Shown here piece by piece: positions 24,601-58,706 of a DNA stretch of 64,000 nucleotides. The stretch's first letter is position 1. Every line of letters begins with the position of its first letter. Origin of the DNA: Heteronotia binoei (taxonomy: Eukaryota); the NCBI RefSeq assembly GCF_032191835.1, contig NW_026800229.1, forward strand, positions 248,001-312,000, written 5' to 3'. Below the pieces are notes generated by a model. It saw only the letters and a list, made by a program, of their open reading frames with translations. It did not search any database and was not told where the DNA came from. A program made the translations under genes and the position numbers.

Positions 24601-27600
24601 TCCCTCTAGGGTGGATAAACAGGCCAGTCCCTTCGACAAAGAACGAATGGACTTAAGTCTGACATCAGAAGCCACAACATGCAAAAAACAGGGGGAGGGG
24701 GGACATTTTAACCTCCCAGGATATCCAGTTGCTGGGAGATCAGAAAGACAGCTGAATTGCAACAAGTAATGAAGCTCAAGACAAGGCACCCACTTGGACT
24801 GAAGCGAGACCTCAGTTTCCTGTCTCATGACCAATGCTGGTTTCTCCATGCCTACTACCTCTCTGCATACCACACTTAATCCAATCACGATTTAAACGGT
24901 CATCTGCCTGCTATTGCAGTATGAAGAAGAAACGCCATGTTAGTGTCAAGGGTCTTGCCAGGAATTTCTACTGCCTTCTGTTCTGATGTTTCCTTGCCCT
25001 TTTGCTTTTGCACCACTCTTTGCAACGGAGTTCTCAAGAAGACTCTGCTGGTCTGGCGGTTGCCTAGGCGACCGAGGCCAACTTGCAGGCCAGATGCACC
25101 TGGGAGGGGATGGACCGGAGGGTTCCCCGTGCGTATTTCCCTGCATTTCCTTTGAAATACAATGGGTGTATGGAATGTATATAAGGGAGGCAAAGACTGG
25201 TCCCTTATCCTGAACTTCATCAAGGTTCAATAAGCTGCTACTACACCAACGGTCTGTTTGATGTTCTTGAGAGCCTGAGGACTTGGCAGCTATCTCAAAA
25301 ATAGTGGAACACACTGTATGATCATCACGGCTTATTATAAGTTTACAAACTCTCGCATACACATTCCCATAACATATATGGAGCATGCAAAACACCATGT
25401 CATATTCATTCCAATTCACAATAAACCAAAAGTCCACAAAGAATCGGTATATGCCGAGCCAGTTTGGTGTAGTGCTTAAGTGCACGGACTCTTAACTGGG
25501 AGAACAGGGGTTGATTGCCTTTTCAGGCAAGCCTATAGTGATATCGACTGCTGAGTTGCTAAGAACAAAGAACCGCCATCTATAATACGATCATGGAACT
25601 ATTTAAACGGGCAGAACCAGCGCCAGAACAGTTATTGCTGCCAGACACATTTAATGTGATTTGAATTATGTATTTTAACTTAACTAACTGGTTTTTATAT
25701 GTTTAATTTTTTAATTGTTAAATTTAAAGTTTTATCCATTTATGTTAATGTAAGAATTGTTGTTAGCCGCCCTGAGCCGCCTAGGCGGGGAGGGCGGGAT
25801 ATAAATAAAATTTATTATTATTATTATTCCCCACTTGCAGCTGCTGGAATGGCCTTGAGTCAGCCAGAGCTTCCACAGGAGTTGTCCTTGAAAGGGCAGT
25901 TGCTGTGAGAGCTCTCTCAGCCTCACCCACCTCACGGGGTGTCTATTGTGGGGGAAGACGGTAGAGGAGATTGTGAGACTCAGAGTATAGGGCGGGATAG
26001 AAATCACCTTCTCTGTACAACAGCAGTAGTCAACAATAATGACTCCACATGTACTAGTTTTGGATTCAATAAGTTCAATAAGTTCAAACGAGGTCCCAGT
26101 GTTACTTCTCACTTCATTTTGATACTTTGTCAATGGAAAACACTCTTGTACAGAAGAACAGCAAGAAGAAAAAGAAGAAGACCGTAGATGTACACCCCGC
26201 CCTTCTCTCTGAATCAGAGTGGCTTACCATCTTCTTTACCTTCCCCTTCTCACAACAGACACCCTGTGAGGTAGGTGGGGCTGAGAGAAACTCTTCACAG
26301 CAGCTGCCCTTTCAAGGACAACTCTATGAGAGCTATGGCTGACCCAAGGCATTTCCAGCAGGTGCAAGTGGAGGAGGGGGGAATCAAACCCGGTTCTCCC
26401 AGATAAGAGAGCTCTGGCTGACCCAAAGCCATTCCAGCAGGTGCAAGTGGAGGAGTGGGGAATCAAACCCGGTTCTCCCAGATAAGAGAGCTCTGGCTGA
26501 CCCAAAGCCATTCCAGCAGGTGCAAGTGGAGGAGGGGGGAATCAAACCCGGTTCTCCCAGATAAGAGAGCTCTGGCTGACCCAAGGCATTTCCAGCAGGT
26601 GCAAGTGGAGGAGGGGGGAATCAAACCCGGTTCTCCCAGATAAGAGAGCTCTGGCTGACCCAAGGCCATTCCAGCAGCTGCAAGTGGAGGAGGGGGGAAT
26701 CAAACCCGGTTCTCCCAGATAAGAGACCTCTGGCTGACCCAAGGCCATTCCAGCAGCTGCAAGTGGAGGAGTGGGGAATCAAACCCGGTTCTCCCAGATA
26801 AGAGAGCTATGGCTGACCCAAGGCCATTCCAGCAGCTGCAAGTGGAGGAGTAGGGAATCAAACCCGGTTCTCCCAGATAAGAGAGCTCTGGCTGACCCAA
26901 GGCCATTCCAGCAGCTGCAAGTGGAGGAGTGGGGAATCAAACCCGGTTCTCCCAGATAAGAGAGCTCTGGCTGACCCAAGGCCATTCCAGCAGCTGCAAG
27001 TGGAGGAGTGGGGAATCAAATCCGGTTCTCCCAGAAAAGAGAGCTCTGGCTGACCCAAGGCATTTCCAGCAGGTGCAAGTGGAGGAGGGGGGAATCAAAC
27101 CTGGTTCTCCCAGATAAGACTCCGCACACTTAACCACTAAACCAAACGTATTCAACTTCCAAAATCACACCTGGGCATCTGCAGAGAAGCTTACCTTCCC
27201 TAGTTTCTGGACGCTGGCCTCCGGAGCTCCAGCAGCATCATTCCCCGGTCTGGATCGCTTTCCCTTGGGCAGAATGGGCTGCCCGGCCTCTTCTTCAATG
27301 GTTTCAATAGCCTGTTTGACCTTTTTACCTGTGAAGGTAACAGACCCTCAGGAGACCCTTCACTCCCACAGCCATCGTGGGAGTCCTTTCCCCAGAGAGG
27401 TCAGAGTGACAACCGCGGCCCTCCCCCGCTTCCACATTCTCCTCATCACACCCCTGGCAAGCAGGGGTCAGCTGTCCCGGATTACCCAGAGCCCATTCTT
27501 GCCCCTCTCTATTCCTCTGCACACCCACCTTTCCGGACGGTTTTCACGGGTGTCTGAATGGCTTCTGTTGCCCGTTTGGTAATCTCCAGGATGTCCAAAT

Positions 27601-30600
27601 CCACCTGCAGGCACAAGGGCAGCACTCAGTAAGGCTGGCTCCTTGGGCTGGCCAACACCACAGGCGGGACAGAGGCTACTTACCATGGCGGCCTTCTCCA
27701 GGGCCTTTTCACCTCCTCCCAGAACTGGAGAGGGGAAAAAAAAGGGACCTTTACTGGAGCAGAACTACAACCCTCCAAGGAACAAGGGGAAGCAGCATCT
27801 CAGGGAAAGTGAGAAGAGGCTGGGCGAAACCATCTTCAGGAGTCAAGGTCTCCCCTCTTCTGGACTAATTGGACACATGATGAAGTCCCAGCAAGCTCAC
27901 CCCAGTCAACAGAAGCAAATTTAGAAGCCACCTCCTGCTGCTGGAGCAAACAGCTTGGAAAAGACACATCCAGCCCCATGACTCCATGACAACTGGCACT
28001 GAGTCAAATGCAAACAGCACTCCCCCCCTCCCTGCCATGGATCACTTGCAGGTGCTGGAGTGCCAATTGGACCCCTCTGCCTCCATCCTCCGCACGTACC
28101 ATAGGTGACCCAGTTCATCTCATGCAGAGCTGCAGGCAAGCGGAGAAGTTCCAGGTTGTAAATGTTGTCGATCTCCTTCAAAAGGCTCTCACACTCTGAT
28201 AGCATGTTCTTTTTGCGGGCCTCGACTGCAGAAAAAAAAAAGATGAAGAAAGGCTGGACTAGGAATGGGGCACAAGCACTAGAATTGCTGAGAACTGTTG
28301 GAACAGAACAGAAGCCCTGCTGGATCAGTGACCCATCCAATCCAACACTAAAAAAACCCAGGCGCCATCAGAACATCCGTCAGTGGAGCCAGGACACTAG
28401 AAGCCATCCCACTGCTCCACCCCCCAAGCACCAAGAAGACAGAGCATCCCTGCCCCAGACAGAGGAACATAAGAGAAGTCATGCTGGATCAGGCCCATGG
28501 CCCCTCCAGTCCAACACTCTGTGTCACATCAGAACATAACAGAAGCCCTGTTGGATCAGGCCCATGGCCCCTCCAGTCCAACACTCTGTGTCACAGAAGA
28601 GAAGCCATATTGGATCAGGCCAATGGCCCATCCAGTCCAACACTCTGTGTTGCATAAGAACATAAGAGAAACCCTGCTGGATCAGGCCAATGGCCCCTCC
28701 AGTCCAACACTCTGTGTCACAGAAGAACATAAGAGGAGCCCTGTTGGATCAGGCCAGTGGCCCCTCCAGTCCAACACTCTGTGTCACAGAAGAGAAGCCA
28801 TATTGGATCAGGCCAATAGCCCATCCAGTCCAAAACTCTGTATCACATACGAACATAAGAGAAGCCATATTGGATCAGGCCAATGGCCCATCCAGTCCAA
28901 CACTCTGTGTTGCATAAGAACATAAGAGTGTTGCATAAGAACATAAGAGTGTTGGATCAGGCCAGTGGCCCCTCCAGTCCAACACTCTGTGTCACATAAG
29001 AACATAAGAGAAGCCATGCTGGATCAGGCCAGTGGCCCCTCCAGTCCAACACTCTGTGTCACAGAAGAGAAGCCATATTGGATCAGGCCAATGGCCCATT
29101 CAGTCCAACACTCTGTGTCACATAAGAACATAAGAGAAGCCATATCGGATCAGGCCAATGGCCCCTCCAGTCCAACACTCTGTGTCACATAAGAACAGAA
29201 GAGAAGCCCTGTTGGATCAAGCCAGTGGCCCCTCCAGTCCAACACTCTGTGTCACGTAAGAGAAGCCCTGTTGGATCAGGCCAATGGCCCATCCAGTCCA
29301 ACACTCTGTGTTGCATAAGAACATAAGAGAAACCCTGCTGGATCAGGCCAATGGCCCCTCCAGTCCAACACTCTGTGTCACAGAAGAACATAAGAGGAGC
29401 CCTGTTGGATCAGGCCAGTGGCCCCTCCAGTCCAACACTCTGTGTCACAGAAGAGAAGCCATATTGGATCAGGCCAATGGCCCATCCAGTCCAACACTCT
29501 GTATCACATACGAACATAAGGGAAGCCATATTGGATCAGGCCAATGGCCCATCCAGTCCAACACTCTGTGTTGCATAAGAACATAAGAGAAGCCCTGTTG
29601 GATCAGGCCAGTGGCCCCTCCAGTCCAACACTCTGTGTCACATAAGAACATAAGAGAAGCCATGCTGGATCAAGCCAGTGGCCCCTCCAGTCCAACACTC
29701 TGTGTCACAGAAGAGAAGCCATATTGGATCAGGCCAATGGCCCATCCAGTCCAACACTCTGTGTCACATAAGAACAGAAGAGAAGCCCTGTTGGATCAAG
29801 CCAGTGGCCCCTCCAGTCCAACACTCTGTGTCACGTAAGAGAAGCCCTGTTGGATCAGGCCAGTGGCCCCTCCAGTCCAACACTCTGTGTCACATAAGAA
29901 CATAAAAGAAGCCCTGTTGGATCAGGCCAGTGGCCCCTCCAGTCCAACACTCTGTGTCACATAAGAACATAAGAGAAGCCATGTTGGATCAGGCCAATGG
30001 CCCCTCCAGTCCAACACTCTGTGTCACATAAGAACAGAAGAGAAGCCCTGTTGGATCAGGCCAGTGGCCCCTCCAGTCCAACACTCTGTGTCACATAAGA
30101 ACAGAAGAGAAGCCCTGTTGGATCAGGCCAGTGGCCCCTCCAGTCCAACACTCTGTGTCACATAAGAACATAAGAGAAACCCTGTTGGATCAGGCCAGTG
30201 GCCCATCCAGCCCAACACTCTGTGTCACATAAGAACATAAGAGAAGCCCTGTTGGATCAGGCCAGTGGCCCCTCCAGTCCAACACTCTGTGTCACATAAG
30301 AACATAAGAGAAGCCCTGTTGGATCAGGCCAGTGGCCCCTCCAGTCCAACAGTCTGTGTCACATGAGAACATAAGAGAAGCCCTGTTGGATCAGGCCAGT
30401 GGCCCCTCCAGTCCAACAGTCTGTGTCACATAAGAACATAAGAGAAGCCCTGTTGGATCAGGCCAGTGGCCCCTCCAGTCCAACACTCTGTGTCACATAA
30501 GAACATAAGAGAAGCCCTGTTGGATCAGGCCCATGGCCCCTCCAGTCCAACACTCTGTGTCACATGAGAACATAAGAGAAGCCCTGTTGGATCAGGCCAG

Positions 30601-32964
30601 TGGCCCCTCCAGTCCAACACTCTGTGTCACATAAGAACATAAGAGAAGCCCTGTTGGATCAGGCCCATGGCCCCTCCAGTCCAACACTCTGTGTCACATG
30701 AGAACATAAGAGAAGCCCTGTTGGATCAGGCCAGTGGCCCCTCCAGTCCAACATTCTGTGTCACATAAGAGAAGCCCTGTTGGATCAGGCCAATGGCCCC
30801 TCCAGTCCAACACTCTGTGTCACATAAGAACATAAGAGAAGCCCTGTTGGATCAGGCCAGTGGCCCCTCCAGTCCAACACTCTGTGTCACATAAGAACAT
30901 AAGAGAAGCCATACTGGATCAGGCCAATGGCCCATCCAGTCCAACACTCTGTGTCGCATAAGAACATAAGATAAGCCCTGTTGGATCAGGTCCATGGCCC
31001 ATCCAGTCCAACACTCTGTGTCACACAGTGGCCAAAACCCAGGTGCCATCAGGACATCCATCAATGGGCCCAGGACACTAGAAGCCCTCCCACTGTGCCC
31101 CCCGCAGCACCAAGTACCCAGAGCATCCCTGCCCCAAACATAAGAACACAAGAGAAGCCCTGTTGGATCAGGCCAATGTCCCATCCAGTCCAACACTCTG
31201 TGTCACACAGTAGACAAAAAATCTATATGCCATCAGGAGGTCCATCAGTGAGGCCAGGACTCTAGAAGCCCTTCCACTGTCCCCCCCCCCCCACAAGCAC
31301 CAAGAATACAGAGCATCACTGCCCCAGACATAAGAGAAGCCATGTTGGATCAGGCCAAGGGCCCATCCAGTCCAACACTGTCACACAGTGGCCAAAACCC
31401 TGGTACCATCAGGAGGTCCATCAGTGGGGCCAGGACACTAAAAGCCCTCCCACTGTTCCCTCCCTCCCAAGCACCAAGAATAGAGAGCATCACTGCCCCA
31501 GACAGAATTCCAACAATACACTGTGGCTAATAGCCCCTGATGGACCTCTGCTCCAGATGTTTGTAGCCTACTACAGGGGGTTTTTTTTGGGGGGGGGGCT
31601 TGGGGCCAGTATCATCATTACTAGAAAAGAGTCAAGAGTCCAGGAATACCTTCTAGGCTCAGAAATTTGTGGCAGGAGAGGAGCTGTCGGGAGTCACTGC
31701 TGCTCCCTTCCTGTCTCAAGCTTTGTTATGGTGCTGCTACTGGCCTCTAGCAGCCCAAGCCCCTAATGTTGAGCTGGAAACTCTTTTGATTTAATTTCAA
31801 CCCAATGGTTCTGGTCCGACCTTCTGGGACCACAGAAAACAATTCCACACCATCCTCTAGATGACAACCCTTCAAGTACTTGAAGATGGTGATCCTATCA
31901 CCTCTCAGCCGCTTCCTCTCCAGGCTAAACATGCCCAGCTCCTTCCACCTTTCCTCATAGGACTTGGTCTCCAGACCAAAACAATTCCACACCATCCTCT
32001 ATAGGACAGCCCTTCAAGTACTTGAAGATGGTGATCCTATCACCTCTCAGCCGCCTCCTCTCCAGGCTAAATATGCCCAGCTCCTTCAACCTTTCCTCAT
32101 AGGACTTGGTCTCCAGAGCCCTCACCATCTTTGTTCCCCTCCTCTAGCTCCGTCAACCTCTTCTCATAGGACTTGGTCTCCAGACTCCTCACCATCTTTG
32201 TTGCCCTCCTCTGGATCCGTTCTAGGTTGTCTATGTCCTTCTGAAAATGTGGTGCCCAAAACTGAACACAAGACTCCAGATGAGGTCTAAGCAGAGCAGA
32301 GTAAAGCGATACCATCATTTTGCATGATATGGATGTTTTACTTTTCTTGATACAGCTCAAAATTGCATTTGCCTTTTTAGCCGCCGCATCACACTGTTGA
32401 CTCATGTTCAGTGTATGGTCCACTAAGACCCCGAGATCCTTTTCACACAGACTACTGCTAAGACAAGTCTCCCCCATCCAGTAACCATACATTGGATTTT
32501 TCCTTCCGAAATGCAGAAGTTTACATTGATCCCTGTTAAAATTCATTGCATTGGTTTCAGCCCAGTTTTCCAGCCTATCAAGGTCATCCTGTATTGCAGG
32601 GGCGGCCAATGGTAGCTCGCCAGGTGTTCTTTGCCTACAATTCCCATCAGCCCCAGCCAGCATGGCCGACGGCTGGGGCTGATGGGAGTTGTAGGCAAAA
32701 GCATCTGGAGCGCTACCCTTGGCCGCCCCTGCTGTATCCTGCCTCTGCCTTCTGCTGTGTTTGCACCCCTCCCCATTTTGCATGATCTGCAAATGCAACA
32801 AGCACCCCCTCCGTTCCTTCCTGCAAATCCTCCGAGCCCCCTAAATACACCCCCCCGCGGCCCACCTTCCGGGCGAAGTCCTTGAGGATGGCCTCGGCCT
32901 TCTTGCTGCGCAGCGAGGCCCTCCTGGAGCCCCCCCGGGTGCCCCTCTTCCGCGACGGCGCCAT
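21689..32964 (-). CDS. CDCA8: Borealin (chromosomal passenger complex subunit), 10 coding exons
   Basis: Exons, all GT-AG: 32964-32866 MAPSRKRG...[12 protein letters not shown]; 28225-28100 (V)[41 protein letters not shown]; 27724-27684 [13 protein letters not shown]; 27604-27529 [25 protein letters not shown]; 27328-27195 [13 protein letters not shown]...KLGK; 23280-23201 [10 protein letters not shown]...RLSR; 23104-23003 SSKVQFVTP...TPKFDS; 22696-22570 [42 protein letters not shown]; 22454-22368 SICLKASEL...KKLS; 21733-21689 [14 protein letters not shown]. Collinear with human Borealin (LKDFDREV, YNIEILRLPKALREMNW, QTPLK, FKTPGLR, NGSPLA). All phases join except exon 1/2 (total 917 nt, 1 nt short). 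Confidence 0.93.
23340..23990 (-). mobile_element. CR1 3' UTR fragments with ~160-bp tandem units (CDCA8 intron 5)
   Basis: Repeated GGTCCACCAGCAGGGCCAGAAC...AGCACCAAGAA...CATCACTGCCCC blocks joined to the 67-bp terminus; ORF2-end remnant at 23870-23990. Confidence 0.8.
24150..24460 (+). mobile_element. CR1 ORF2 reverse-transcriptase fragment
   Basis: [41 protein letters not shown] is the CR1 RT motif (FADD degenerate). Confidence 0.85.
26165..27150 (-). repeat. Squam3-type SINE with internal 79-bp tandem array (10 units), in CDCA8 intron 5
   Basis: GGTTCTCCCAGA recurs every 79 bp from ~26392 to ~27103; SINE head at ~27150, tail at ~26170. Confidence 0.9.
28480..31030 (-). repeat. 67-bp CR1-3'-end array in CDCA8 intron 1, with 55-bp deleted variants and a 661-bp higher-order repeat
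   Basis: Same unit; variant block GTTGCATAAGAACATAAGAGAAACCCTGCTGG recurs at ~28650 and ~29311. Confidence 0.95.
31765..32596 (-). mobile_element. CR1 (second family) ORF2 3' portion, with local duplications
   Basis: [31 protein letters not shown]...[32 protein letters not shown]...[14 protein letters not shown]. Confidence 0.9.
32597..32731. mobile_element. hAT-type MITE (135 bp)
   Basis: TIRs CAGGGGCGGCCAA...TTGGCCGCCCCTG; internally palindromic; flanks CTGTATTG / CTGTATCC (degenerate 8-bp TSD). Confidence 0.75.
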
Positions 32965-36389: not shown

Positions 36390-38058
36390 CGCGTTCTCCT
36401 TCACCCAAACGGTGATTAACATGTGGAACTCACTGCCACAGGAGGCCACAAGTATAGCCACCTTCAAGGGGGGTTTAGATAAAAATATGGAGCACAGTTC
36501 CATCAGTGGCTATTAGTCACAGTGTGTGTGTATATATAAAATTTTTTGCCAGTGTGTGACACAGAGTGTTGGACTGGATGGGCCACTGGCCTGATCCAAC
36601 AGGGCTTCTCTTATGTTCTTATGTGACACAGAGTGTTGGACTGGAGGGGCCATTGGCCTGATCCAACAGGGCTTTTCTTATGTGACAGAGTTTTGGACTG
36701 GAGGGGCCACTGGCCTGATCCAACAGGGCTTCTCTTGTATTCTTATGTGACACAAAGTGTTGGACTGGAGGGGCCATTGGCCTGATCCAACAGGGCTTCT
36801 CTAATGTTCTTATGTGACACAGAGTGTTGGACTGGAGGGGCCACTGGCCTGATCCAACAGGGCTTCTCTAATGTTCTTATGTGACACAGAGTGTTGGACT
36901 GGAGGGGCCACTGGCCTGATCCAATATGGCTTCTCTGATGTTCTTATGTGTGACACAGAGTGTTGGACTGGATGGGCCACTGGCCTGATCCAACAGGGCT
37001 TCTCTTATGTTCTTATGTGACACAGAGTGTTGGACTGGAGGGGCCACTGGCCTGATCCAACAGGGCTTCTCTTATGTTCTTATGTGACACAGAGTGTTGG
37101 ACTGGATGGGCCACTGGCCTGATCCAACAGGGCTTCTCTTATGTTCTTATGTGACACAGAGTGTTGGACTGGATGGGCCATTGGCCTGATCCAACAGGGC
37201 TTCTCTTATGTTCTTATGTGACACAGAGTGTTGGACTGGAGGGGCCACTGGCCTGATCCAACAGGGCTTCTCTAATGTTCTTATGTGACACAGAGTGTTG
37301 GACTGGAGGGGCCACTGGCCTGATCCAACAGGGCTTCTCTTATGTTCTTATGTGACACAGAGTGTTGGACTGGAGGGGCCATTGGCCTGATCCAACAGGG
37401 CTTCTCTTATGTTCTTATGTGACACAGAGTGTTGGACTGGAGGGGCCATTGGCCTGATCCAACAGGGCTTCTCTTATGATCTTATGTGACACAGAGTGTT
37501 GGACTGGAGGGGCCACTGGCCTGATCCAACAGGGCTTCTCTTATGTTCTTATGTGACACAGAGTGTTGGACTGGAGGGGCCACTGGCCTGATCCAACAGG
37601 GCTTCTCTTATGTTCTTATGTGACACAGAGTGTTGGACTGGAGGGGCCACTGGCCTGATCCAACAGGGCTTCTCTTATGTTCTTATGTGACACAGAGTGT
37701 TGGACTGGAGGGGCCACTGGCCTGATCCAACAGGGCTTCTCTTATGTTCTTATGTGACTCAGAGTGTTGGACTGGAGGGGCCACTGGCCTGATCCAACAG
37801 GGCTTCTCTTATGTTCTTATGTGACACTGAGTGTTGGACTGAAGGGGCCACTGGCCTGATCCAACAGGGCTTCTCTTATGTTCTTATGTGACACACAGAG
37901 TGTTGGACTGGAGGGGCCATTGGACAGATCCAACAGGGCTTCTCTTATGTGACACAGAGTGTTGGACTGGAGGGGCCACTGGCCTGATCCAGCAGGGCTT
38001 CTCTAATGTTCTTATGTGACACAGAGTGTTGGACTGGAGGGGCCACTGGCCTGATCCA
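36390..38058 (+). repeat. CR1 3' end followed by ~22 tandem 67-bp units
   Basis: FTQTVINMWNSLPQ remnant, then array from ~36555 to 38058. Confidence 0.92.
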
Positions 38059-38984: not shown

Positions 38985-39990
38985 CCCCACCCTCCACGCA
39001 CCAAGAATACAGGTCATCGCTTCCCAGACATAAGAACATAAGAGAAGCCATGTTGAATCAGGCCAATGGTCCATCCAGCCCAGCACTCTGTGTCACACAG
39101 TGGCCAAAACGCAGGTGCCTTCAGGAGGTCCTTCAGTGGGGCCAAAACACTAGAAGCCCTCTCACTGTGCCCCACCCCCAAGCACCAAGAATACAGGTCA
39201 TCACTTCCCAGACATAAGAGAAGCCATGTTGGATCAGGCCAGTGGCCCATCCAGTCCCACACTCTGTGTCACACAGTGGCCAAAAAACCCAGGTGCCATC
39301 AGGAGGTCCACTAGTGGGGCCAGAACTCCAGAAGCCATCCCACTGTGGCCCCCCCAAGCACCAAGAATACAAAGCATCCCTTCCCCAGACGTAAGAGAAG
39401 CCCTGTTGGATCAGACCAATGGCCCATCCAGTCCAACACTCTGTGTCACACAGGGGCCCAAAAACTTAGGTGCCACCAGGAGATCCATCAGTGGGGCCAC
39501 TATAAGCCCTCACACTGTGCCCCCCTCCCAAGCACCAAGAATACAGAGCATCACTGCCCCAGACATAAGAACATAAGAGAAGTCATGCTGGATCAGGCCA
39601 GTGGCCCCTCCAGTCCAACACTCTGTGTCACATAAGAACATAAGAGAAGCCCTGTTGGATCAGGCCAGTGGCCCCTCCAGTCCAACACTCTGTGTCACAT
39701 AAGAACATATGAGAAGCCATGTTGGATCAGGCCAGTGGCCCCTCCAGTCCAACACTCTGTGTCACATAAGAACATAAGAGAAGCCATATTGGATCAGGCC
39801 AGTGGCCCATCCAGTCCAACACTCTGCGTCTCATAAGAACATAAGAGAAGCCCTGTTGGATCAGGCCAGTGACTCATCCAGTCCAACACTCTGTGTCACA
39901 CAGGGGCCAAAAAAACACGTGCCATCAGGAGGTCCACCAGTGGGGCCAGGACACTAGAAGCCCTCCCACTGTTGCCCCCCCACCAAGTTC
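38985..39990 (-). repeat. CR1 3' UTR ~160-bp tandem units plus 67-bp units
   Basis: Longer units at 38985-39570 and 39890-39990; 67-bp units at ~39570-39890. Confidence 0.85.
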
Positions 39991-40559
39991 GCTGCAACTT
40001 CATGGTTCGTGTGCACATACACACGCACACACGATTGGTGAGATGATAGAAGTTAATGAGATTATTCATGGGGTGAAGAACATGGATCAAAGACCTTTTC
40101 CTCCCACTTCCATAATAGTAGAATTTGTGGGCACTGGATGAAGTTCATCAGCTTCTTGTTCAGGGCAGGCAAAAGGCAATACTTCTTCTCTCAGTGAGTA
40201 ATTGCCAAAGGATGTAGTGATGGCCATGAGCACAGACAGCTTTCAAAGGGTTTCAGAGAGCTTGAAGAGGGAGAGGTCCATCAGGGGCCACTAGCCTTGG
40301 CCAGAGCCAGAACACAACCCTGGGGAAGGCCTTGGCCTCCATGCCCTGTTGTTGGCCCTCCAGAGGCTCAGCAAAGGTGGCTTCCCTGAGCTTGTGAGTG
40401 TTGCTGAGCCCAAGGCCGTTTGCCTTGCCAGTATCTCCAACGCCCCCCAGCCATCTGCTTGGATCTAGAGGGGTGCCTCAAGCATTCCCTGCAATCGTGG
40501 CTCAGCAGATTTCGTTTCTGTGGTGTCAGAATCCAAGCACCGCCTGGGCGAGCCCCAGG

Positions 40560-40700
40560 GCAGGGGCTTTATCTCAAGCGGAGAAAAGGGTCTGCCTGAA
40601 GCCAGCTAAGGTATCAGAGGAGCCAGGCATGACTCAGCTGTGACTCAGCAGAACGGGAGGCAGGGCAAAAGTGCAGAGTCATGGCACATGCAGCTCACCC
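40560..40700. promoter_or_regulatory. Candidate erythroid enhancer (LCR HS2-like): tandem NF-E2/MARE plus GATA
   Basis: ATGACTCAGCTGTGACTCAGCA at 40629-40650 (reverse TGCTGAGTCACAGCTGAGTCAT); TTATCT at 40569-40574; unique, non-repeat DNA. Confidence 0.55.
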
Positions 40701-41199
40701 AGCCCCTGTTTGGGAGGGATGTCTTCCTCCAGCTGCTCTTTGCAAGCCCTTTTGGCTAGCAGAAGGCAGGGGAGGGAGGGGAGAGAGCTCCATTACAGAG
40801 GAAGGGGACTGACATTTGCTATTGGGCTCTTTTAGCAACATTCATGGCCTCCTCTGATTCTAGGAGGTGTTCTCTGCCCAAACCCTCTTTTGGTGAGGGG
40901 CAGAGAAAGACTACCCTACAGGAAGGTCCATGAGCACCTTAGTGACCAGCAGGGTCCATGAGTACATTAGTGACCAGCAGCAAGAATTTCAGGGGCAACA
41001 ACAGGGCAGTGAGGCCAAGGCCTTCCCCTGAGCAGAACATCAGAAGAGCCCTGCTGGGTCAGACCAGTGAGGGTCAACCTAGTCCAGCCTTCTGTCTCAC
41101 ACAGTGGGCAGCCAGTTCCTCTGGAGGGCCAACAACAGGGCAGAGAGGCTGAGGCCTTCCCCTGAGAAGAACATCAGAAGAGCCCTGCTGGGTCAGAGC

Positions 41200-43187
41200 A
41201 ATGGCCCATCCAGTCCAACACTCTGTATCACATAAGAACATAAGAGAAGCCCTGTTGGATCAGGCCAGTGGCCTTTCCAGTCCAACACTCTGTGTCACAT
41301 AAGAACGTAAGAGAAGCCCTGTTGGATCAGGCCAGTGGCCCCTCCAGTCCAACACTCTGTGTCACATAAGAACATAAGAGAAGCCTTGTTGGATCAGGCC
41401 AGTGGCCCCTCCAGTCCAACACTCTGTGTCACATAAGAACATAAGAGAAGCCCTGTTGGATCAGGCCACTGGCCCCTCCAGTCCAACACTCTGTGTCACA
41501 TAAGAACATAAGAGAAGCCCTGATGGATCAGGCCAATGGCCCCTCCAGTCCAACACTCTGTGTCACATGAGAACATAAGAGAAGCCCTGTTGGATCAGGC
41601 CAATGGCCCCTCCAGTCCAACACTCTGTGTCACATAAGAACATAAGAGAAGCCCTGTTGGATCAGGCCAGTGGCCCCTCCAGTCCAACACTCTGTGTCAC
41701 ATAAGAACATAAGAGAAGCCCTGTTGGATCAGGCCAATCGCCCCTCCAGTCCAACACTCTAGGTCACATAAGAACATAAGAGAAGCCCTGTTGGATCAGG
41801 CCAGTGGCCCCTCCAGTCCAACACTCTGTGTCACATAAGAAAAAAAGAGAAGCCCTGTTGGATCAGGCCAATGGCCCCTCCAGTCCAACACTCTGTGTCA
41901 CAGGAGAACATAAGAGAAGCCCTGTTGGATCAGGCCAATGGCCCCTCCAGTCCAACACTCTGTGTCACATAAGAACATAACAGAAGCCGTGTTGGATCAG
42001 GCCAGTGGCCCCTCCAGTCCGACACTCTGGGTCACATAAGAACATAAGTGAAGCCCTATTGGATCAGGCCAGTGGCCCACCCAGTCCAACACTCTGTGTC
42101 ACATAAGAGAAGCCATGTTGAATCAGGCCAGTGGCCCCTCAAGTCCAACACTCTGTGTCACATAAGAACAAAAGAGAAGCCCTGTTGGATCAGGCCAATG
42201 GCCCCTCCAGTCCAACACTCTGTGTCACATAAGAACATAAGAGAAGCCCTGTTGGATCAGGCCAGTGGCCCCTCCAGTCCAACACTCTGTGTCACATAAG
42301 AACATAAAAGAAGCCCTGTTGGATCAAGCCAATGGCCCCTCCAGTCCAACACTCTGTGTCACATAAGAACATAAGAGAAGCCCTGTTGGATCAGGCCAGT
42401 GGCCCCTCCAGTCCAACATTCTGTGTCACATAAGAACATAAGAGAAGCCCTGTTGGATCAGGCCAGTGGCCCCTCCAGTCCAACACTCTGTGTCACATAA
42501 GAACATAAAAGAAGCCCTGTTGGATCAGGCCAATGGCCCCTCCAGTCCAACACTCTGTGTCACATAAGAACATAAGAGAAGCCCTGTTGGATCAGGCCAG
42601 TGGGCCCTCCAGTCCAACACTCTGTGTCACATAAGAACATAAGAGAAGCCCTGTTGGATCAGGCCAATGGCCCCTCCAGTCCAACACTCTGTGTCACATA
42701 AGAACATAAGAGAAGCCCTGTTGGATCAGGCCAGTGGCCTCTCCAGTCCAACACTCTGTGTCACATAAGAACATAAGAGAAGCCATGTTGGATCAGGCCA
42801 ATGGCCCCTGCAGTCCAACACTCTGTGTCACATAAGAACATAAGAGAAGCCCTGTTGGATCAGGCCAGTGGCCCCTCCAGTCCAACACTCTGTGTCACAT
42901 AAGAACATAAGAGAAGCCCTGTTGGATCAGGCCACTGGCCCCTCCAGTCCAACACTCTGTGTCACATAAGAACATAAGAGAAGCCCTGTTGGATCAGGCC
43001 AGTGGCCCATCCAGCCCAACACTCTGTGTCACATAAGAACATAAGAGAAGCCCTGTTGGATCAGGCCACTGGCCCCTCCAGTCCAACACTCTGTGTCACA
43101 TGAGAACATAAGAGAAGCCCTGTTGGATCAGGCCAATGTCCCCTCCAGTCCAACACTCTGTGTCACATAAGAACATAAGAGAAGCCC
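41200..43187 (-). repeat. 67-bp CR1-3'-end tandem array (~29 units)
   Basis: Same unit in reverse orientation. Confidence 0.95.
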
Positions 43188-43269
43188 TGGTTTGGCCACT
43201 CCTGCACGAGCCGCAAACACGTGTGTCGCTTGTGCATTGTGGCTGAAGAATGTGGACCTGAATGCCTGG

Positions 43270-43600
43270 ACACATTGAAGCTGCCTTGCACTGAAGGAGA
43301 CCCTTGGTCCATCCAGGGCAGTGTTGTCTACTCAGACCAGCACCAGCCCTCCAGGGTCTCAGCAGGCAGAGAGAGGTCTTCACAGCACCTGCTGCCTGGT
43401 TCCTCCAACTGGAGATGCTGCTGGGGATCGAACCTGGAACCTTCTGCATGCCAAGCAGCTCTGGCAGCGACACTCAGGAGGAAATCTTTCCCATCCCCTC
43501 CTGCCTGGTCCTTTTAACTGGAGATGCTCCTGGGGATTGAACTGGGGACCTTCTGCATGCCAGGCAGAGGCTCTGCCATTGAGCTGTGGCCTGTCCCTGA
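43270..43600 (-). mobile_element. Squam2-type tRNA-derived SINE with duplicated head
   Basis: CTGGAGATG...GGGGATTGAACTGGGGACCTTCTGCATGCCAGGCAGAGGCTCTGCCATTGAGC (reverse tRNA head) and TGAAGCTGCCTT tail. Confidence 0.7.
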
Positions 43601-43732
43601 ACCTCAAACACCAGAAAGGCCCTGAGGAAATGGAGGCCGGAGTCCTGAGGCTCATAGCAGGACGGATGGAAGAAAAGGGCTTCCGAGGATTTGATCCTGC
43701 CTGAACCTTCTGCGCGGTTGGGCCTAGAAGAA

Positions 43733-45575
43733 GAAGAAGATATTGGATTTATATCCCACCCTATACTCTGAATCTCAGAGTTTCAGAGCGGTCACAATCT
43801 CCTTTACCTTCCCCCCCCCTTTACAACAGACACCCTGACTCTGAGCTCTGACAGAAACTGCCCTTTCAAGGGCAACTCCTGCGAATGCTCTGGCTAACCC
43901 AAGGCCATTCCAGCAGGTGCAAGTGGAGGAGGGGGGAATCAAACCCGGTTCTCCCAGATAAGAGAGTTCTGGCTGACCCAAGGCCATTCCAGCAGGTGCA
44001 AGTGGAGGAGTGGGGAATCAAACCCGGTTCTCCCAGATAGGAGAGCTCTGGCTGACCCAAGGCCATTCCAGCAGGTGCAAGTGGAGGAGTGGGAAATCAA
44101 ACCCGGTTCTCCCAGATAGGAGAGCTCTGGCTGACCCAAGGCCATTCCAGCAGCTGCAAGTGGAGGAGTGGGAAATCAAACCCGGTTCTCCCAGATAGGA
44201 GAGCTCTGGCTGACCCAAGGCCTTTCCAGCAGCTGCAAGTGGAGGAGTGGGGAATCAAACCTGGTTCTCCCAGAGAAGAGAGCTCTGGCTGACCCAAGGC
44301 CATTCCAGCAGGTGCAAGTGGAGGAGTGGGGAATCAAACCCGGTTCTCCCAGATAAGAGATCTCTGGCTGACCCAAGGCCATTCCAGCAGGTGCAAGTGG
44401 AGGAGTGGGGAATTAAACCCGGTTCTCCCAGATAGGAGAGCTCTGGCTGACCCAAGGCCATTCCAGCAGGTGCAAGTGGAGGAGTGGGGAATCAAACCTG
44501 GTTCTCCCAGATAAGAGAGCTCTGGCTGACCCAAGGCCATTCCAGCAGGTGCAAGTGGAGAAGTGGGGAATCAAACCCGGTTCTCCCAGATAAGAGATCT
44601 CTGGCTGACCCAAGGCCATTCCAGCAGGTGCAAGTGGAGGAGTGGGGAATCAAACCCGATTCTCCCAGATAAGAGTGCTCTCGCTAACCCAAGGCCATTC
44701 CAGCAGGTGCAAGTGGAGGAGGGGGGGAATCAAACTCAGTTCTCCTAGATAAGAGAGCTATGGCTGACCCAAGGTTATTCCAGCAGGTGCAAGTGGAGGA
44801 GTGGGGAATCAAACCGGATTCTCCCAGATAAGAGAGTTCTGGCTGACCCAAGGCCATTCCAGCAGGTGCAAGTGGAGGAGTGGGGAATCAAACCCGGTTC
44901 TCCCAGATAGGAGAGCTCTGGCTGACCCAAGGCCATTCCAGCAGCTGCAAGTGGAGGAGTGGGGAATCAAACCTGGTTCTCCCAGATAAGAGAGCTCTGG
45001 CTGACCCAAGGCCATTCCAGCAGGTGCAAGTGGAGGAGTGGGGAATCAAACCCGGTTCTCCCAGATAAGAGATCTCTGGCTGACCCAAGGCCATTCCTGC
45101 AGGTGCAAGTGGAGGAGTGGGGAATCAAACCCGATTCTCCCAGATAAGAGTGCTCTCGCTAACCCAAGGCCATTCCAGCAGGTGCAAGTGGAGGAGGGGG
45201 GGAATCAAACTCAGTTCTCCTAGATACGAGAGCTATGGCTGACCCAAGGTTATTCCAGCAGGTGCAAGTGGAGGAGTGGGGAATCAAACCGGATTCTCCC
45301 AGATAAGAGAGTTCTGGCTGACCCAAGGCCATTCCAGCAGGTGCAAGTGGAGGAGTGGGGAATCAAACCCGGTTCTCCCAGATAGTAGAGCTCTGGCTGA
45401 CCCAAGGCCATTCCAGCAGGTGCAAGTGGAAGAGTGGGGAATCAAACCCGGTTCTCCCTGATAAGAGAGCTATGGCTGACCCAAGGCCATTCCAGCAGGT
45501 GCAAGTGGAGGAGGGGGGAATCAAACCCGGTTCTCCCATAGAAGAGTCTGCACACTTCACCACTACACCAAACTG
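43733..45575 (-). repeat. Squam3-type SINE with internal 79-bp tandem array (~21 units) including a 475-bp hexamer duplication
   Basis: 79-bp periodicity; variant GTGCTCTCGCTAACCC recurs 475 bp apart; SINE head at ~45570, (GAA)n tail at ~43735. Confidence 0.92.
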
Positions 45576-45819
45576 GTCTCTGGGCCATTTCCCAGCTGCA
45601 GGTGGGTCACTCTTGGGATCAGCAGAGTTCCCGAGAGGGAATCCACTGCCACATCTCCTCACAGCCCTCTCTGGGAAGGAAGCCTCCTCACAGAACAAAG
45701 GTAAAGCCCGTGGGAGTCTGTGGGCAGCCCCCCTTCCTTCTCTCCCCTCTCCCCCCGCCCCCCGCACAGGGCAGAGGCCCCCCCAGAGGCTGCCCCGCAG
45801 CAATGCCCTCCTTCCCATC

Positions 45820-45920
45820 TCCTTTATCACAGCCTCCAGGGAGGGGGGGTGGTGGCTTCTATCAGGCCTCTGGGCCACAGGGCATGGGTGGGCCCTTCAG
45901 CTGCCTCAGCCAGATAGGGG
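45820..45920. promoter_or_regulatory. Candidate erythroid enhancer (LCR HS3-like): alternating GATA and CACC/GT boxes
   Basis: WGATAR at 45824-45829, 45859-45864 and 45912-45917; GGGTGG at 45847-45852 and 45886-45891. Confidence 0.5.
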
Positions 45921-46335
45921 AGGGAGCCCAGGGCCGCAGGGCGCATCTGGAAAAGGCAGCAGACCAAAGCGATGCAGCCAAGAAGACGTGAGCTGCGAGT
46001 GGGAAGGAAGGAAGAGGAGGACTCCCCCAAGCGAGGCGGCCCCTCCGTGGTCCCCAGGAAGGCTGCTTGTGCCACCGGGCAGCCTGAGAGGTTTCCGGAC
46101 TGCCTGGGCTTGCGTCGGGTCTGCTGCAGCTTCTGGCTGCCGAGAGGCCGGGGGGGCAGACATCAGAGAGCCAGAGCTCCTCCCCCCCTCCCAACCCAGC
46201 ATCCTGTCTCGGGGGCTGCTGGCCTGTTCATGGGTCTGAACATGCACCACTTCCTGAGCTTCAGAGCAAAAGGAGGATTTGAACCCAGGGCTTCCTTGGC
46301 CAAGGCTGTCACATTGCTTAAGACTGGCTCACTTC

Positions 46336-51078: not shown

Positions 51079-52419
51079 GCTTCTCTTATGTTCTTATGAG
51101 ACTCTTTGGAGTGGAGGGTGGGATATGAATCCAATATCTTCATCTACCTTACAGGGTGTCTGTTGGAGGGGGGGGGAGAAGGTAAAGGAGATTGTGAGCT
51201 GCTCTGAGACTCTTCGGAGTGGAGGGCGGGATATAAATCCAATATCTCCATCTACCTCACAGGGTGTCTGTTGTGGGGGAGGAAGGGAAAGGAGGTTGTG
51301 AGCTGCTTTGTGACTCTTCGGAGTGGAGGGCGGGATATAAATCCAATATCTTCATCTACCTCACAGGGTGTCTGTTGTGGGGGGGAGGGAGGTAAAGGAG
51401 ATTGTGAGCCACTCTGAGACTCTTCAGAGTCGAGGGCAGGATAAATCCAATATCATCTTCTTCTTCCGCCCCGAAAGCGCGCAGATATTCCTTTAGTTAG
51501 ACCTGGCAACCCTAGCGGGCAAAGGCCCTGAGGTGAAAACTGGGGTGCCCACCTTCCCAGCCTGCCCTGGGGCCTTTGCCTTCAGCACCTCCCTGGATGG
51601 GGCAGCTTCCCCTCCTGGCAGGAGGATGGAGTGTGTGGAGAGGTTAGGTTAGGTTTAGGCCTGCTCCAGAATCCCTGGGGCCTCTAAAACAGTGTGCAGC
51701 CCAAGCTGAGGAAGCAAAGAGAGAAAATGAGGGGGTAAGGGAAGTGTAGGGGCCATGCTGGAGGTGGGGGGCAGGAGGCGGCTGAGGAAGAGAGGGTGGT
51801 GGCAGCAGCGGCAGCAGTGTGAAATAGGCCCTTTGCAGCCCTGTTGGGTTCAGCCCCCAGGAAACACTGCTGTCTGTTGCTGCTGCCTGCGTTCTGTCCA
51901 AGCAAAGCTGCCTTCGGGGGCTTGTTGGCTGGCCTGTGTTTTGGGCCCACGTGCCTTCATGATATGGAGCCAGCCAGTGTGGTAGAGTACCTGGCATAGG
52001 GTCCAAAAGAGCTGGGTTCAACTCTCCACTCAGCTGTGGAGCTCATCGGGTGAGCCAGTGACAAACTCTCAGCCTAACTTGGGGGCTTGCTGACCTTCAG
52101 GGTGGGCCTGGAGTAGGGTGGCCAGGTGTGTTTTGGAAGACACCTGGAGACTTTGAAGGTGTTTCCAGGAGAGGGCGGGGTTTGGGGAGGTGAGGGGCCT
52201 CAGCAGGGTACAAGGCCAGAGAGTCTACTCTTCCAACCAGCCAGTTTCTCCAGGGTAGCTGATCTCTGCCAGCTGGAGATCAGTTGTGAAAGCAGGAGAT
52301 CAGGCCACAAATGGAGGCTGGCAACCCTAGCCCTAGAGATTTCCTGTATTTATATATCTGGTCTCCAGATCAGCTTCCCTGGAGAAAACAGCTGCTTTGG
52401 AGGAGAACATAAGAAGATA

Positions 52420-53300
52420 AGAGAAGCCCTGTTGAATGTGGACAAGGGCCCACCCAGTCCAACACTCTGTGTCACATAAGAACAGAAGAGAAGCCAGGTT
52501 GGATCAGGCCAACGGCCCCTCCAGTCCAACACTCTCTGTCAAATAAGAACATAAGAAAAGCCCTGTTGGATCAGGCCAGTGGCCCCTCCAGTCCAACACT
52601 CTGTGTCACATAAGAACATAAGAGAAGCCCTGTTGGATCAGGCCAGTGGCCCCTCCAATCAAACACTCTGTGTCACAGCAGAACATAAGAGAAGCCCTGT
52701 TGGATCAGGCCAATGGCCCCTCCAGTCCAACACTCTGTGTCACATAAGAACAGAAGAGAAGCCATGTTGGATCAGGCCAGTGGCCCCTCCAGTCCAGCAC
52801 TCTGTGTCACAAAGGAACATAAGAGAAGCCCTGTTGGATCAGGCCAATGGCTCCTCCAGTCCAACACTCTGTGTCACATAAGAACATAAGAGAAGCCCTG
52901 TTGGATCAGGCCAATGGCCCCTCCAGTCCAACACACTGTGTCACATAAGAACATAAGAGAAGCCCTGTTGGATCAGGCCAGTGGCCCCTCCAGTCCAACA
53001 CTCTGTGTCACATAAGAACATAAGAGAAGCCCTGTTGGATCAGGCCAGTGGCCCATCCAGTCCAACACTCTGTGTCACATAAGAACATAAGAGAAGCCCT
53101 GTTGGATCAGGCCAGTGGCCCCTCCAGTCCAACACTCTTTGTCACATAAGAGAAGCCTGTTGGATCAGGCCAATGGCCCTCCAGTCCAACGCTCTGTGTC
53201 ACATAAGAACATAAAAGAAGCCCTGTTGGATCAGGCCAATGGCCCCTCCAGTCCAACACTCTGTGTCACATAAGAACATAAGAGAAACCCTCTTGGATCA
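52420..53300 (-). repeat. 67-bp CR1-3'-end tandem array (~13 units)
   Basis: Same unit; ends in a (GGAA)n microsatellite (53303-53396) at the contig end. Confidence 0.93.
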
Positions 53301-53396
53301 AGCCAAGGAAGGAAGGAAGGAAGGAGGGAAGGAAGGAAGGAAGGAGGGAGGGAGGAAGGAAGGAAGAAGGGAGGGGGAGGAAGGAAGGAAGAAAGT

Positions 53397-53662
53397 NNNN
53401 NNNNNNNNNNNNNNNNNNNNNNNNNNNNNNNNNNNNNNNNNNNNNNNNNNNNNNNNNNNNNNNNNNNNNNNNNNNNNNNNNNNNNNNNNNNNNNNNNNNN
53501 NNNNNNNNNNNNNNNNNNNNNNNNNNNNNNNNNNNNNNNNNNNNNNNNNNNNNNNNNNNNNNNNNNNNNNNNNNNNNNNNNNNNNNNNNNNNNNNNNNNN
53601 NNNNNNNNNNNNNNNNNNNNNNNNNNNNNNNNNNNNNNNNNNNNNNNNNNNNNNNNNNNNNN
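53397..53662. other. Assembly gap (266 N)
   Basis: Run of N. Confidence 1.
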
Positions 53663-54119: not shown

Positions 54120-54286
54120 TCCACCAAACTTCCCTCCCCCCCAACTCCCGCCAAGGCCTGGGCACACCCGGCAAGGAGGAGCTTCTGGTATAAAATCCCT
54201 CAGGAGGAGGCCCAGCTCAGCTCCAGCCTTTCCCGAAGCAGCCCAGCCAAGCTCCCGAGCGATCCACCCCCACCCGCCAGCCAGCC
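54120..54286 (+). promoter_or_regulatory. Promoter and 5' UTR of beta-globin gene 1
   Basis: TATAAAA at 54189-54195; CCAAG at 54151 where gene 2 has CCAAT; 5' UTR GCTCAGCTCCAGCCTTTCCCGAAGCAGCC shared with gene 2. Confidence 0.75.
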
Positions 54287-55879
54287 ATGGTGCACTGGAC
54301 CGAGGAAGAGAAGAAGCTCATCACCACCATCTGGGGCAAAGTGGACGTAGCGGAAACCGGCGCCAAACGCCCTGGCCTAGTACGGCACCTGGGGGCTGGG
54401 GGGGAGGGTTGCCTTGGTCACCAGCAGGGGATGGGGGTGCCAGCTCCAGGCTGGAGATTTGGGGGTGGGGCCTGCAGAAGAGAATAGCCTCAGTGGGGTA
54501 CAATAATGCCACAGAGACCACCCTCCGTATTCTCTCCAGGGAAACTGATCTCCATAGTCTGGAGCTGAGCTGTAATTCTGGAGGATCTCCAGGTCCCACC
54601 TGGAGGATGGCACCCCTAGCTGGGAGTGTGTGTGAATGAGTGAGAGTGAGAGAGAGAGAGTTGGGTGCTGCTCCACAGAGCGGGCAAGCCTGAGCCTGTG
54701 TGTTTGCCTCGCCCTCCCCAGCTTGCTGGTGGTGTACCCCTGGACCCAGAGGTTTTTTGCGGATTTTGGGAACCTGTCCAGCGCCACCGCCATTCTGCGG
54801 CAACCCCAAGGGTGCGTGCCCATGGCAAGAAGGTGCTGACCTCCTTCGGAGACGCCATCAAGAACTTGGACAACATCAAGCCGACCTTTGCCAAGCTGAG
54901 CGAGCTGCACTGCGACAAGCTCCACGTGGACCCGGAGAACTTCAGGGTGAGCTGGCACAGGGGGAGGGGTGGGGGTGATCAGCTGAGCTCCTCTCGGGCT
55001 GCCCCAGTTCCCAGGAGGGGGCAGAAACCACCCCCGTCTCCTCTGCATCCACCTTCCATGGCCAGACCCTCCCATCTCCTGTCCGTGGGAGGGAAAATCT
55101 TCCAGGAGGGGGAGAAGAGAGCTGGTGAGGTGGGCAGGAGGGGGTGGGAGAGGTGGCAAATGAGGGCAGGGCTGATAAAGGCAAGGGGTCCCCCTCAATG
55201 CCCAGGGGACCCTTCATGTTCTTCACCCAAAGGGTGATTATCACGTGGAATTCACTGCCACAGGAGGTGGCAGCAGCTACAAGCATAGACAGCTTCAAGA
55301 GGGGGACTGGATCAACATCTGGAGCAGAGGTCCATCAGTGGCTCTTAGCCACAACGTATTGTTGGAACTTTCTGTCTGGGGCAGTGAGGCTCTGGATTCC
55401 TGATGCTTGATGGGGGCACAGTGGGACGGCTTCTAGTGTCCTGGCCCCACGGGTGGACCTCCTGATGGCACCTGGGTTTCTTTTGGCCATCGTGTGCCAC
55501 AGAGTGTTAGACTGGAAGGGCCACTGGTCTAATCCAACATGGCTTTTCTTATGTTCTTATATTCTTGGTGCTTGGGGGGGGGGGGACACAGTGGGAGGGC
55601 TTCTAGCATCCTGGCCCCACTGGTGGACCTCCTGATGGCACTTGGGGGTTTTCTGGCCCCTGTGTGACACAGTGTTGGACTGGAGGGGCCACTGGCCTGA
55701 TCCAACAGGCCTTCTCTTATGTTCTTATCTTCTCCCTCTTCTCTTGCAGCTTCTGGGCGACGTCCTCACTCATCGTCATGGCCGCCCACTTCGGGAAGGA
55801 CTTCACCCCCGCCGTCCACGCCGCCTTCCACAAGCTGGTCCGCGTGGTGGCCCACGCCCTGGCTCACCGCTACCACTAG
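54287..55879 (+). CDS. HBB: Beta-type globin gene 1, 3 exons, with four 1-nt insertions (assembly errors or recent pseudogene)
   Basis: Exons 54287-54379 (93 nt vs canonical 92), 54722-54946 (225 vs 223), 55750-55879 (130 vs 129). [26 protein letters not shown]..., [65 protein letters not shown], ...ALAHRYH*. AATAAA at 55932. Confidence 0.85.
55215..55725 (+). mobile_element. CR1 3' end in intron 2 of globin gene 1
   Basis: [17 protein letters not shown] remnant plus a duplicated 3' UTR unit. Confidence 0.85.
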
Positions 55880-58439: not shown

Positions 58440-58706
58440 GCTGGTTTGGTGTAGTGGTGAAGTGCGCGGACTCTTATCTGGGAGAACCGGGTTTGATTCC
58501 CCCCTCCTCCACTCGCAGCTGCTAGAATGGCCTTGAGTCAGACATAGCTCTAGCAGAGTTGTTTTTGAAAGGACAGCTGCTGTGAGAGCTCTCTCAGCCC
58601 CACCCACCTCCCAGAGTGTCTGTTGTGGGGGAGGAAGTGAATGGAGATTGTGAGCCGCTCTGAGATTCGGAGTGGAGGGCGGGATATAAATCCAATATCT
58701 TCTTCA
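58440..58706 (+). mobile_element. Squam3-type SINE ~130 bp upstream of the globin gene 2 CCAAT box
   Basis: Full head, body and tail. Confidence 0.85.

Follow-up and report, generated by a model that had tools for sequence, protein, structure and literature searches.

A conserved tandem MARE element upstream of the Heteronotia beta-globin genes as a candidate squamate counterpart of the LCR enhancer HS2

In a 64-kb stretch of Heteronotia binoei DNA (here called the window), we identified a tandem pair of MAREs upstream of the beta-globin genes, within a block that, judged from its sequence, very probably represents in lizards and snakes what the HS2 enhancer is in the globin LCR of mammals and birds. 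We consider it likely that a distal erythroid enhancer is centred on the tandem site, and that it belongs to a set of two or more conserved upstream elements jointly forming a squamate beta-globin LCR. A first-pass annotation of this DNA had proposed an HS2-like squamate LCR element at the same place, and the proposal gains support from the position of the block, its conservation in six squamates, its motif footprint and the presence of a partner element.

The tandem MARE site and its genomic setting

The plus strand at positions 40628-40650 of the window reads CATGACTCAGCTGTGACTCAGCA, and its reverse complement, TGCTGAGTCACAGCTGAGTCATG, is an exact match to the minus-strand tandem sequence given in the first-pass annotation. 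The arrangement described there was also borne out, i.e. two AP-1 cores 11 bp apart, one of them a full NF-E2 site, with a GATA site ∼55 bp away. The TGACTCA cores begin at 40630 and 40641, and both carry a GC extension on the Maf side (GCTGAGTCA, minus strand) that turns an AP-1 site into a MARE. In MARE 1 (40630-40638, minus strand), TGA.TCAGC is invariant across the six squamates described below. MARE 2 (40641-40650, minus strand) lies 11 bp from MARE 1 and has the full NF-E2 consensus, TGCTGAGTCAC, with TGACTCAGCAG invariant in the same six species; it is the single occurrence of TGCTGASTCA in 64 kb. A third MARE position, absent from the earlier description, was found at 40672-40682 on the plus strand (TGCAGAGTCAT); it has one mismatch, is inverted relative to MAREs 1 and 2, and its TGC..AGTCA is invariant.

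The GATA consensus site is at 40569-40574 (TTATCT on the plus strand, AGATAA on the minus strand). Its distance to the first TGACTCA core is 56 bp, and TTATC is invariant in the six squamates. A second GATA core lies on the minus strand at 40612-40615, within GGTATCAG on the plus strand (40610-40617); it reads TGATAC on the minus strand and so does not fit WGATAR, and its TATC is likewise invariant in six squamates. Further upstream, a conserved block at 40498-40532 (plus strand) holds TGGCTCAGCAG, a MARE with one mismatch, followed by GTTTCTGTGGTGTCAGAAT, which contains a TGTGGT RUNX-like core; this block is near-invariant across four gecko alignment rows (three species). It is followed by a GC-rich box, GCACCGCCTGGGC, at 40537-40549 (plus strand), which is kept among geckos. 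Two features of the motif map count against an HS2-like reading: the MARE element has only one consensus WGATAR, compared with two in human HS2, and no consensus KLF site was found within it.

Heptamers matching TGASTCA are not enriched in the window (13 observed, 13.5 expected). The spaced pair TGASTCA-N4-TGASTCA occurs once, compared with none in 100 dinucleotide shuffles, and the first-pass annotation had likewise seen no other such tandem site outside SINEs. The two tandem units form a direct repeat with 10 of 11 positions identical, so the pair was probably made by slippage. These properties raise the question of whether the two motifs came together by chance, or by local 11-bp slippage, and lie without function in neutral or repeat-derived DNA, as might be suspected from the lack of heptamer enrichment, the ease with which slippage yields such a repeat, and the satellites and SINE fragments that surround the site. 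The single-copy status of the element in relatives, and the lack of a second copy in the window or, off the syntenic position, in 11 other loci, speak against such an origin; together with the gecko-to-snake conservation set out below, they leave it very improbable.

The element sits in a single-copy island (40380-40980), for which self-BLAST gave no second copy within the window. In contigs assembled from four DNA runs of three relatives and aligned at ≥80%, positions 40449-40840 have a depth of 6-16, as expected of single-copy sequence. The flanking repeats (40200-40390, and from 40990 onwards) are high-copy, with a depth of 1e4 to 4e5 at 40200-40390, and 39900-39990 and 40990-41170 are repeat members by self-comparison of the window. 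The earlier description of the site as lying in unique DNA thus holds for 40390-40980. A profile search returned no additional copy of the MARE element in the window or, outside the syntenic position, in 11 other loci, and so the element is not a dispersed repeat. A transposable-element or repeat origin of the MARE core was ruled out by its single-copy depth and the absence of other copies. An RNA gene was considered and dropped, since an Rfam search of 39900-46200 at E up to 0.1 gave zero family matches, and a coding or small-ORF reading was ruled out by alignment indels of 1, 2 and 11 bases, none a multiple of three; the block is therefore neither an RNA gene nor coding.

The surrounding intergenic space is crowded with kilobase-long arrays of one 67-bp unit, in both orientations, together with a 79-bp unit (8934-12547, 17899-20009, 28465-31025, 36555-38058, 41167-43189 and 52407-53306; also 26328-27119 and 43887-45546), and 67-bp satellite arrays lie on both sides of the island. 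One repeat fragment next to the island (40308-40388) reaches a summed depth of 1e5 to 4e5 in the contigs of relatives. Just upstream of an OR51-like ORF, three AP-1/MARE-like sites fall within 900 bp (13476-14350), namely GCTGAGTCA at 13476 and 14205 and TGAGTCA at 14344. The CTCF/insulator motif CCASYAGRKGGCRS had zero matches in the window and five relaxed matches.

The ATG of the first beta-globin gene is at 54287, 13,637 bp downstream of the tandem site when the only N run of the window (53397-53662, 266 N) is counted, in line with the ∼13.6 kb estimated in the first-pass annotation. The OR51-like gene, a single-exon ORF, lies at 15238-16248. The MARE element is thus placed between this gene and the first of two beta-globin genes, as expected for an HS2-type element, and amniote beta clusters have a comparable placement among olfactory-receptor and globin genes (PMC5786229).

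Conservation of the MARE element in squamates

Motif-centred conservation of the element was found in six squamates, which is the result of the multi-species squamate alignment that the first-pass annotation had put forward as a check. The comparison sequences were 10-kb flanks around the beta-globin genes of other species, and the public H. binoei contig (L001) was either excluded from the comparisons or truncated at position 5200 or 5306. For the search beyond geckos, nhmmer profiles were built from gecko and five-species alignments. Profile searches (nhmmer E 1e-22 to 1e-37) placed orthologous blocks in Paroedura, Sphaerodactylus, Rhineura, Candoia and Protobothrops, in each case with a beta-globin gene 4.7-9 kb downstream. 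By BLAST of 40380-40980, Paroedura picta has a match at L003 2785-3104, 7 kb upstream of the first beta gene (76%, E 2e-63), and Sphaerodactylus townsendi has two blocks, at L005 740-1229 and 17757-18247, which lie 9 kb upstream and 6.5 kb downstream of one called beta gene (71%, E ∼1e-74). The orthologue of Rhineura floridana (L008 5187-5371, minus strand; nhmmer E 6e-34) is 4.7 kb upstream of a beta gene and ∼4.6 kb downstream of another globin gene. In the snakes Candoia aspera (L009 1294-1421, plus strand; E 6e-30) and Protobothrops mucrosquamatus (L012 4007-4120, minus strand; E 2e-22), the element lies 8.6 and 5.9 kb upstream of a beta gene, respectively; in these three loci beyond the geckos, the profile gave a single match each. 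The two Sphaerodactylus copies are near-identical and 17,017 bp apart, which fits a tandem duplication of the entire enhancer-plus-gene unit.

Overall, the element is linked to beta-globin genes in six to seven species. The six squamates with the block span Gekkota, Amphisbaenia and Serpentes, or Gekkota, Laterata and Toxicofera by NCBI lineage, and the occurrence of the element in all three of these lineages dates its origin to the base of Bifurcata, i.e. nearly the entire squamate crown, as far as the sequence matches indicate. Two species gave no match. In Tiliqua, no match to the element was found in the 10 kb that precede the first beta-globin gene, including 5.5 kb upstream of the second element described below, and in Eublepharis it was not found in the sequence searched, which reaches 2.7 kb upstream of the second element. 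The MARE element may have been lost in these species, or may be located further out.

Conservation within the block is concentrated on the motifs. In a repeat-filtered comparison of the whole window, covering ∼20 kb upstream of the genes, the only blocks aligning among geckos were the MARE block and 45591-46062. In the gecko alignment, the tandem MAREs and the sequence on either side of them, out to the GATA site and the third MARE, form the best-kept stretch, and the columns invariant across six species are TTATC, CTGCC, TATC, GGAG.C.GGC, TGA.TCAGC, TGACTCAGCAG and TGC..AGTCA. All six squamates retain the GATA site, the tandem MAREs at 11-bp pitch and the third MARE position. Over the 67-bp core, identity to Heteronotia is 88% in Paroedura, 90% in Sphaerodactylus, 79% in Rhineura and 71% in Candoia, compared with 42%, 37%, 30% and 22%, respectively, over the right flank. 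We read this pattern as purifying selection on precisely these motifs over about the whole squamate crown. Conservation from gecko to snake, at a syntenic place and with invariance centred on motifs, contradicts the view that the MARE pair arose by chance or slippage and has no function.

A similar pattern was seen among close relatives, where single-copy contigs of three relatives are ∼86% identical over the island. The contig of one relative (X1) covers 40488-40741 with 35 differences and, among the 34 of 35 that were listed, none falls in 40601-40667; the contigs of the other two (X2 and X3) follow the same pattern, with no listed difference in 40601-40667. The chance that a fixed 67-bp stretch stays unchanged at 13% divergence is ∼7e-5. 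A search of sequencing runs for this DNA returned five DNA-like runs and no RNA run.

Each species has at least two perfect MAREs, but the sites that are perfect differ between species. Paroedura has lost site 1 (TGATTCAGC) and has a perfect site 3 (TGCTGAGTCA), and site 3 is the same perfect sequence in Candoia and Protobothrops. In the boa Candoia, TGACTCAGC is repeated three times with a pitch of exactly 11 bp (L009 1355-1420), an inverted perfect TGCTGAGTCAC adds a fourth MARE, and the arrangement looks like a slippage expansion of the tandem pair. These differences are consistent with a turnover of binding sites during which the function of the element would have been retained.

The orientation of the element also varies, since Rhineura and Protobothrops have it inverted with respect to the globin genes, and Candoia and the geckos do not. 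This mixed orientation implies at least two local inversions of the element, or assembly errors.

A second conserved element and the predicted squamate LCR

Between the MARE element and the globin genes, we found a second conserved element at 45591-46062 (core 45811-45927, plus strand), which combines GATA, CACCC and E-box-GATA motifs. Its GATA motifs are at 45824 (minus strand), 45859 (minus strand) and 45912 (plus strand), and its CACCC boxes are at 45847 and 45886 (both minus strand), with GGGTGTGGG among them in other geckos. An E-box-N8-GATA composite, CAGCTGCCTCAGCCAGATAG, occupies 45898-45917 (CTG-N8-AGATAG), with CAGCTGCCTCAGCCAGATAGGG invariant in the alignment of the element. Composites of the CTG-N8-GATA type are typical of GATA1-TAL1-LDB1 sites.

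The second element has BLAST matches in Paroedura, Eublepharis and Sphaerodactylus, and its core was detected by nhmmer in Rhineura (E 8e-10), Candoia (7e-6), Tiliqua (3e-4) and Protobothrops (4e-4). It is therefore known from eight squamate species, and in every case it is on the plus strand with a beta-globin gene downstream. The order MARE element, GATA/CACCC element, globin gene is the same in six of them (Heteronotia, Paroedura, Sphaerodactylus, Rhineura, Candoia and Protobothrops). Thus, as in an LCR, which has several separate elements upstream of its cluster, the squamate locus has two conserved elements in a fixed order.

Based on work on mammalian and chicken LCRs, we propose how the two elements could act. 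In the nucleated red-cell lineage, heterodimers of CNC-bZIP and small-Maf proteins would bind the two MAREs, which are spaced by one helical turn, as well as the inverted third position. NF-E2 p45 paired with MafK is the likely activator, and BACH1 or NRF2 might compete for the same motif. GATA1 would bind the invariant AGATAA 56 bp away, and the MARE- and GATA-bound factors are predicted jointly to open chromatin and recruit co-activators. The second element may recruit GATA1-TAL1-LDB1 and KLF1 and serve as a platform, and both elements would then loop to the beta-globin promoters 8-14 kb away. Protein binding, chromatin opening, looping and enhancement are all taken here by analogy from the mammalian and chicken systems.

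The motif TGACTCAGC doubles as an antioxidant-response element and as an AP-1 site, and so the sequence alone is silent on the factor that binds it and the tissue in which it does so. The block could accordingly be a conserved enhancer that is not erythroid, an AP-1 or NRF2/ARE element serving another gene, with its linkage to globin an incidental matter of synteny. A possible target is a CDCA8-like gene on the minus strand, between the OR51-like ORF and the globin genes; its first two coding exons are near 32.9 and 28.0 kb (from ORF translations), which puts the first exon ∼7.5 kb from the MARE element, on the side opposite the globin genes. Against incidental synteny, the element remains within a few kilobases upstream of a beta-globin gene in each of the six to seven species where it is linked to one. 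In Rhineura it lies between two globin genes, and in Sphaerodactylus two copies surround one called globin gene. Moreover, the 10-kb flanks of Paroedura, Candoia and Protobothrops contain no other called gene that could be its target, and the invariant GATA site, with a partner element of GATA, CACCC and E-box-GATA motifs, has the signature of an erythroid element. We therefore regard a non-erythroid role as improbable, and favour the MARE element as an erythroid enhancer of the globin genes.

The presumed targets of both elements are the two beta-globin genes of the window, each with three exons on the plus strand. Gene 1 (54287-55879) was defined by ORF translations, an exon-2 alignment and a public gene call, and gene 2 (58979-61580) by ORF translations; Heteronotia binoei hemoglobin subunit beta-2-like matches exon 2 of gene 2 at 99% identity. 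From 54200 to 64000, the window is 100% identical over 9.8 kb to the public contig JAVQKZ010000210.1 (GCA_032191835.1). This contig is N-free in the stretch retrieved, and the N run of the window noted above therefore looks like deliberate masking. Exon 2 of gene 1 (54780-54820) has two extra homopolymer bases relative to gene 2 (a T at ∼54793 and a G at ∼54810), which give a net shift of +2 and a stop a short way downstream. Both bases are also present in the public contig, although a product of 147 aa is annotated there. Gene 1 may be a real pseudogene or the product of an assembly error.

Relationship to bird and mammalian LCR elements

Many features of the gecko element recall mammalian 5′HS2. 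Both lie upstream of the first beta-like gene, at a similar distance and in an olfactory-receptor neighbourhood. In each, two NF-E2/MARE sites stand in tandem at a spacing of about one helical turn, and GATA motifs occur within ∼60 bp of them (PMC2504316); within an LCR of several elements, the gecko element would likewise be the one rich in MAREs. Human HS2 requires its tandem NF-E2 motifs for formation of the site and for GATA-1 occupancy, and its full enhancer function depends on the two GATA motifs beside the NF-E2 pair (PMC2504316). More generally, NFE2 (p45 plus small Maf) binds the strongest globin enhancers of the alpha and beta clusters, and much LCR activity resides at NFE2 sites (PMC12452803). 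Unlike human HS2, the gecko element has its GATA motifs on the gene-distal side (5′ of the MAREs), and these consist of one consensus site and one non-consensus core; the third MARE of squamates, and the fourth of Candoia, also set it apart from mammalian 5′HS2. The pitch of the tandem pair differs as well, being 10 bp in human HS2 and 11 bp in the gecko.

Among birds, the chicken LCR sites HS1-HS3 are the closest comparison, since they too are sauropsid and form separate erythroid hypersensitive blocks upstream of the first gene (PMC3502096, PMC4879735). Chicken HS1-3 carry H3K27ac and eRNAs in erythrocytes (PMC4879735) and contact globin promoters (PMC3502096). The proposed gecko enhancer would differ from chicken HS2 in one respect, the activity of chicken HS2 having been ascribed to GATA sites and not to NF-E2 (Abruzzo and Reitman 1994, as cited in PMC4879735).

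A candidate avian counterpart was found in the house finch, where a region 7.7 kb upstream of rho-globin (L011 2214-2381) is collinear with the gecko profile over ∼170 bp, as a weak match (nhmmer 12.8 bits, E 5e-4). Dinucleotide shuffling of the locus gave no equal score in 300 trials (best 11.9 bits), and the five-species core profile matched the finch block at only E 0.011. The matched blocks are, in order, TGGCTCAGCAG, TTTCTG.TGTCAGA, GCAC.G.CC, TTATC, (G/T)TATCA, CCAGGC and GTGACTCAGCA, and the most confident portion corresponds to the upstream block at 40498-40532. The counterpart of the gecko GC-rich box is GCACTGTCC, and the position aligned to the second gecko GATA core has a consensus TTATCA in the finch. 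In content, the finch block combines a pair of perfect MAREs, 122 bp apart and not in tandem, with two GATA sites and one CACCC motif; one of the perfect MAREs and the CACCC motif are interspersed between the matched blocks. In the sparrow cluster (L010), the profile had no match in the intergenic regions or in the 2.2 kb upstream of the cluster. Together, the finch data are suggestive of an avian LCR site homologous to the squamate element.

Whether the squamate element, the finch block and mammalian 5′HS2 share a single origin is less certain. True orthology of the three is possible but somewhat doubtful on our assessment, and the chance is not far short of even that the squamate element is an erythroid globin enhancer which arose independently of mammalian HS2, resembling it through convergent use of the same factors. 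Such convergence would account for the order of GATA and MARE sites relative to the genes, which is reversed compared with human HS2, for the weakness of the finch match, and for the GATA-dependent activity attributed to chicken HS2 in the 1994 work cited above. It fits less well with the collinearity of the finch match over 170 bp, its expected place upstream of rho and its score beyond all 300 shuffles. The reversed order also loses weight, since the MARE element flips orientation within squamates and orientation is therefore little informative on homology to HS2. If the three are orthologous, the amniote ancestor already had a MARE-plus-GATA LCR core at the time the beta cluster took up its place among olfactory-receptor genes. 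This core would then have survived through turnover of its sites (two to four MAREs at shifting positions) and repeated local inversion.

To our knowledge, beta-globin LCRs have been dissected only in mammals and chicken. A full-text literature search for globin LCRs together with lizard, snake or Anolis returned no relevant description, in agreement with the first-pass annotation, which knew of no functional description in lizards. A comparison of sauropsid globin clusters makes no mention of an LCR, locus control or an enhancer (PMC5786229). The element itself is as expected from mammals and birds, and what squamates add is variation in site number, compensation between sites, and inversion. 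Our analysis provides exact coordinates for two candidate gecko LCR elements, with orthologues in seven further squamate species. Once aligned, these orthologues amount to a natural mutagenesis series, with two, three or four MAREs, compensated site loss, both orientations and, in a skink, a possible loss of the element. In animals with nucleated, transcriptionally accessible red cells, it becomes testable whether the amniote LCR is ancestral or was repeatedly assembled, and a second question is opened, namely how free a strong enhancer is in the number, order and orientation of its sites.

Two other globin enhancers use similar motifs. The chicken betaA/epsilon 3′ enhancer contains NF-E2 and GATA motifs and lies 3′ of an adult gene, whereas the gecko element is upstream of both genes of the window. 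Rhineura shows a placement like that of the chicken enhancer, between globin genes, and Sphaerodactylus probably does too; in the other four species (Heteronotia, Paroedura, Candoia and Protobothrops), the element is instead upstream of the first or only globin gene seen. The alpha-globin enhancer HS-40/MCS-R2 has the same vocabulary, with paired MAREs flanked by GATA and CACCC motifs, and it resides in an NPRL3 intron of the alpha cluster, on another chromosome and unlinked to the beta locus.
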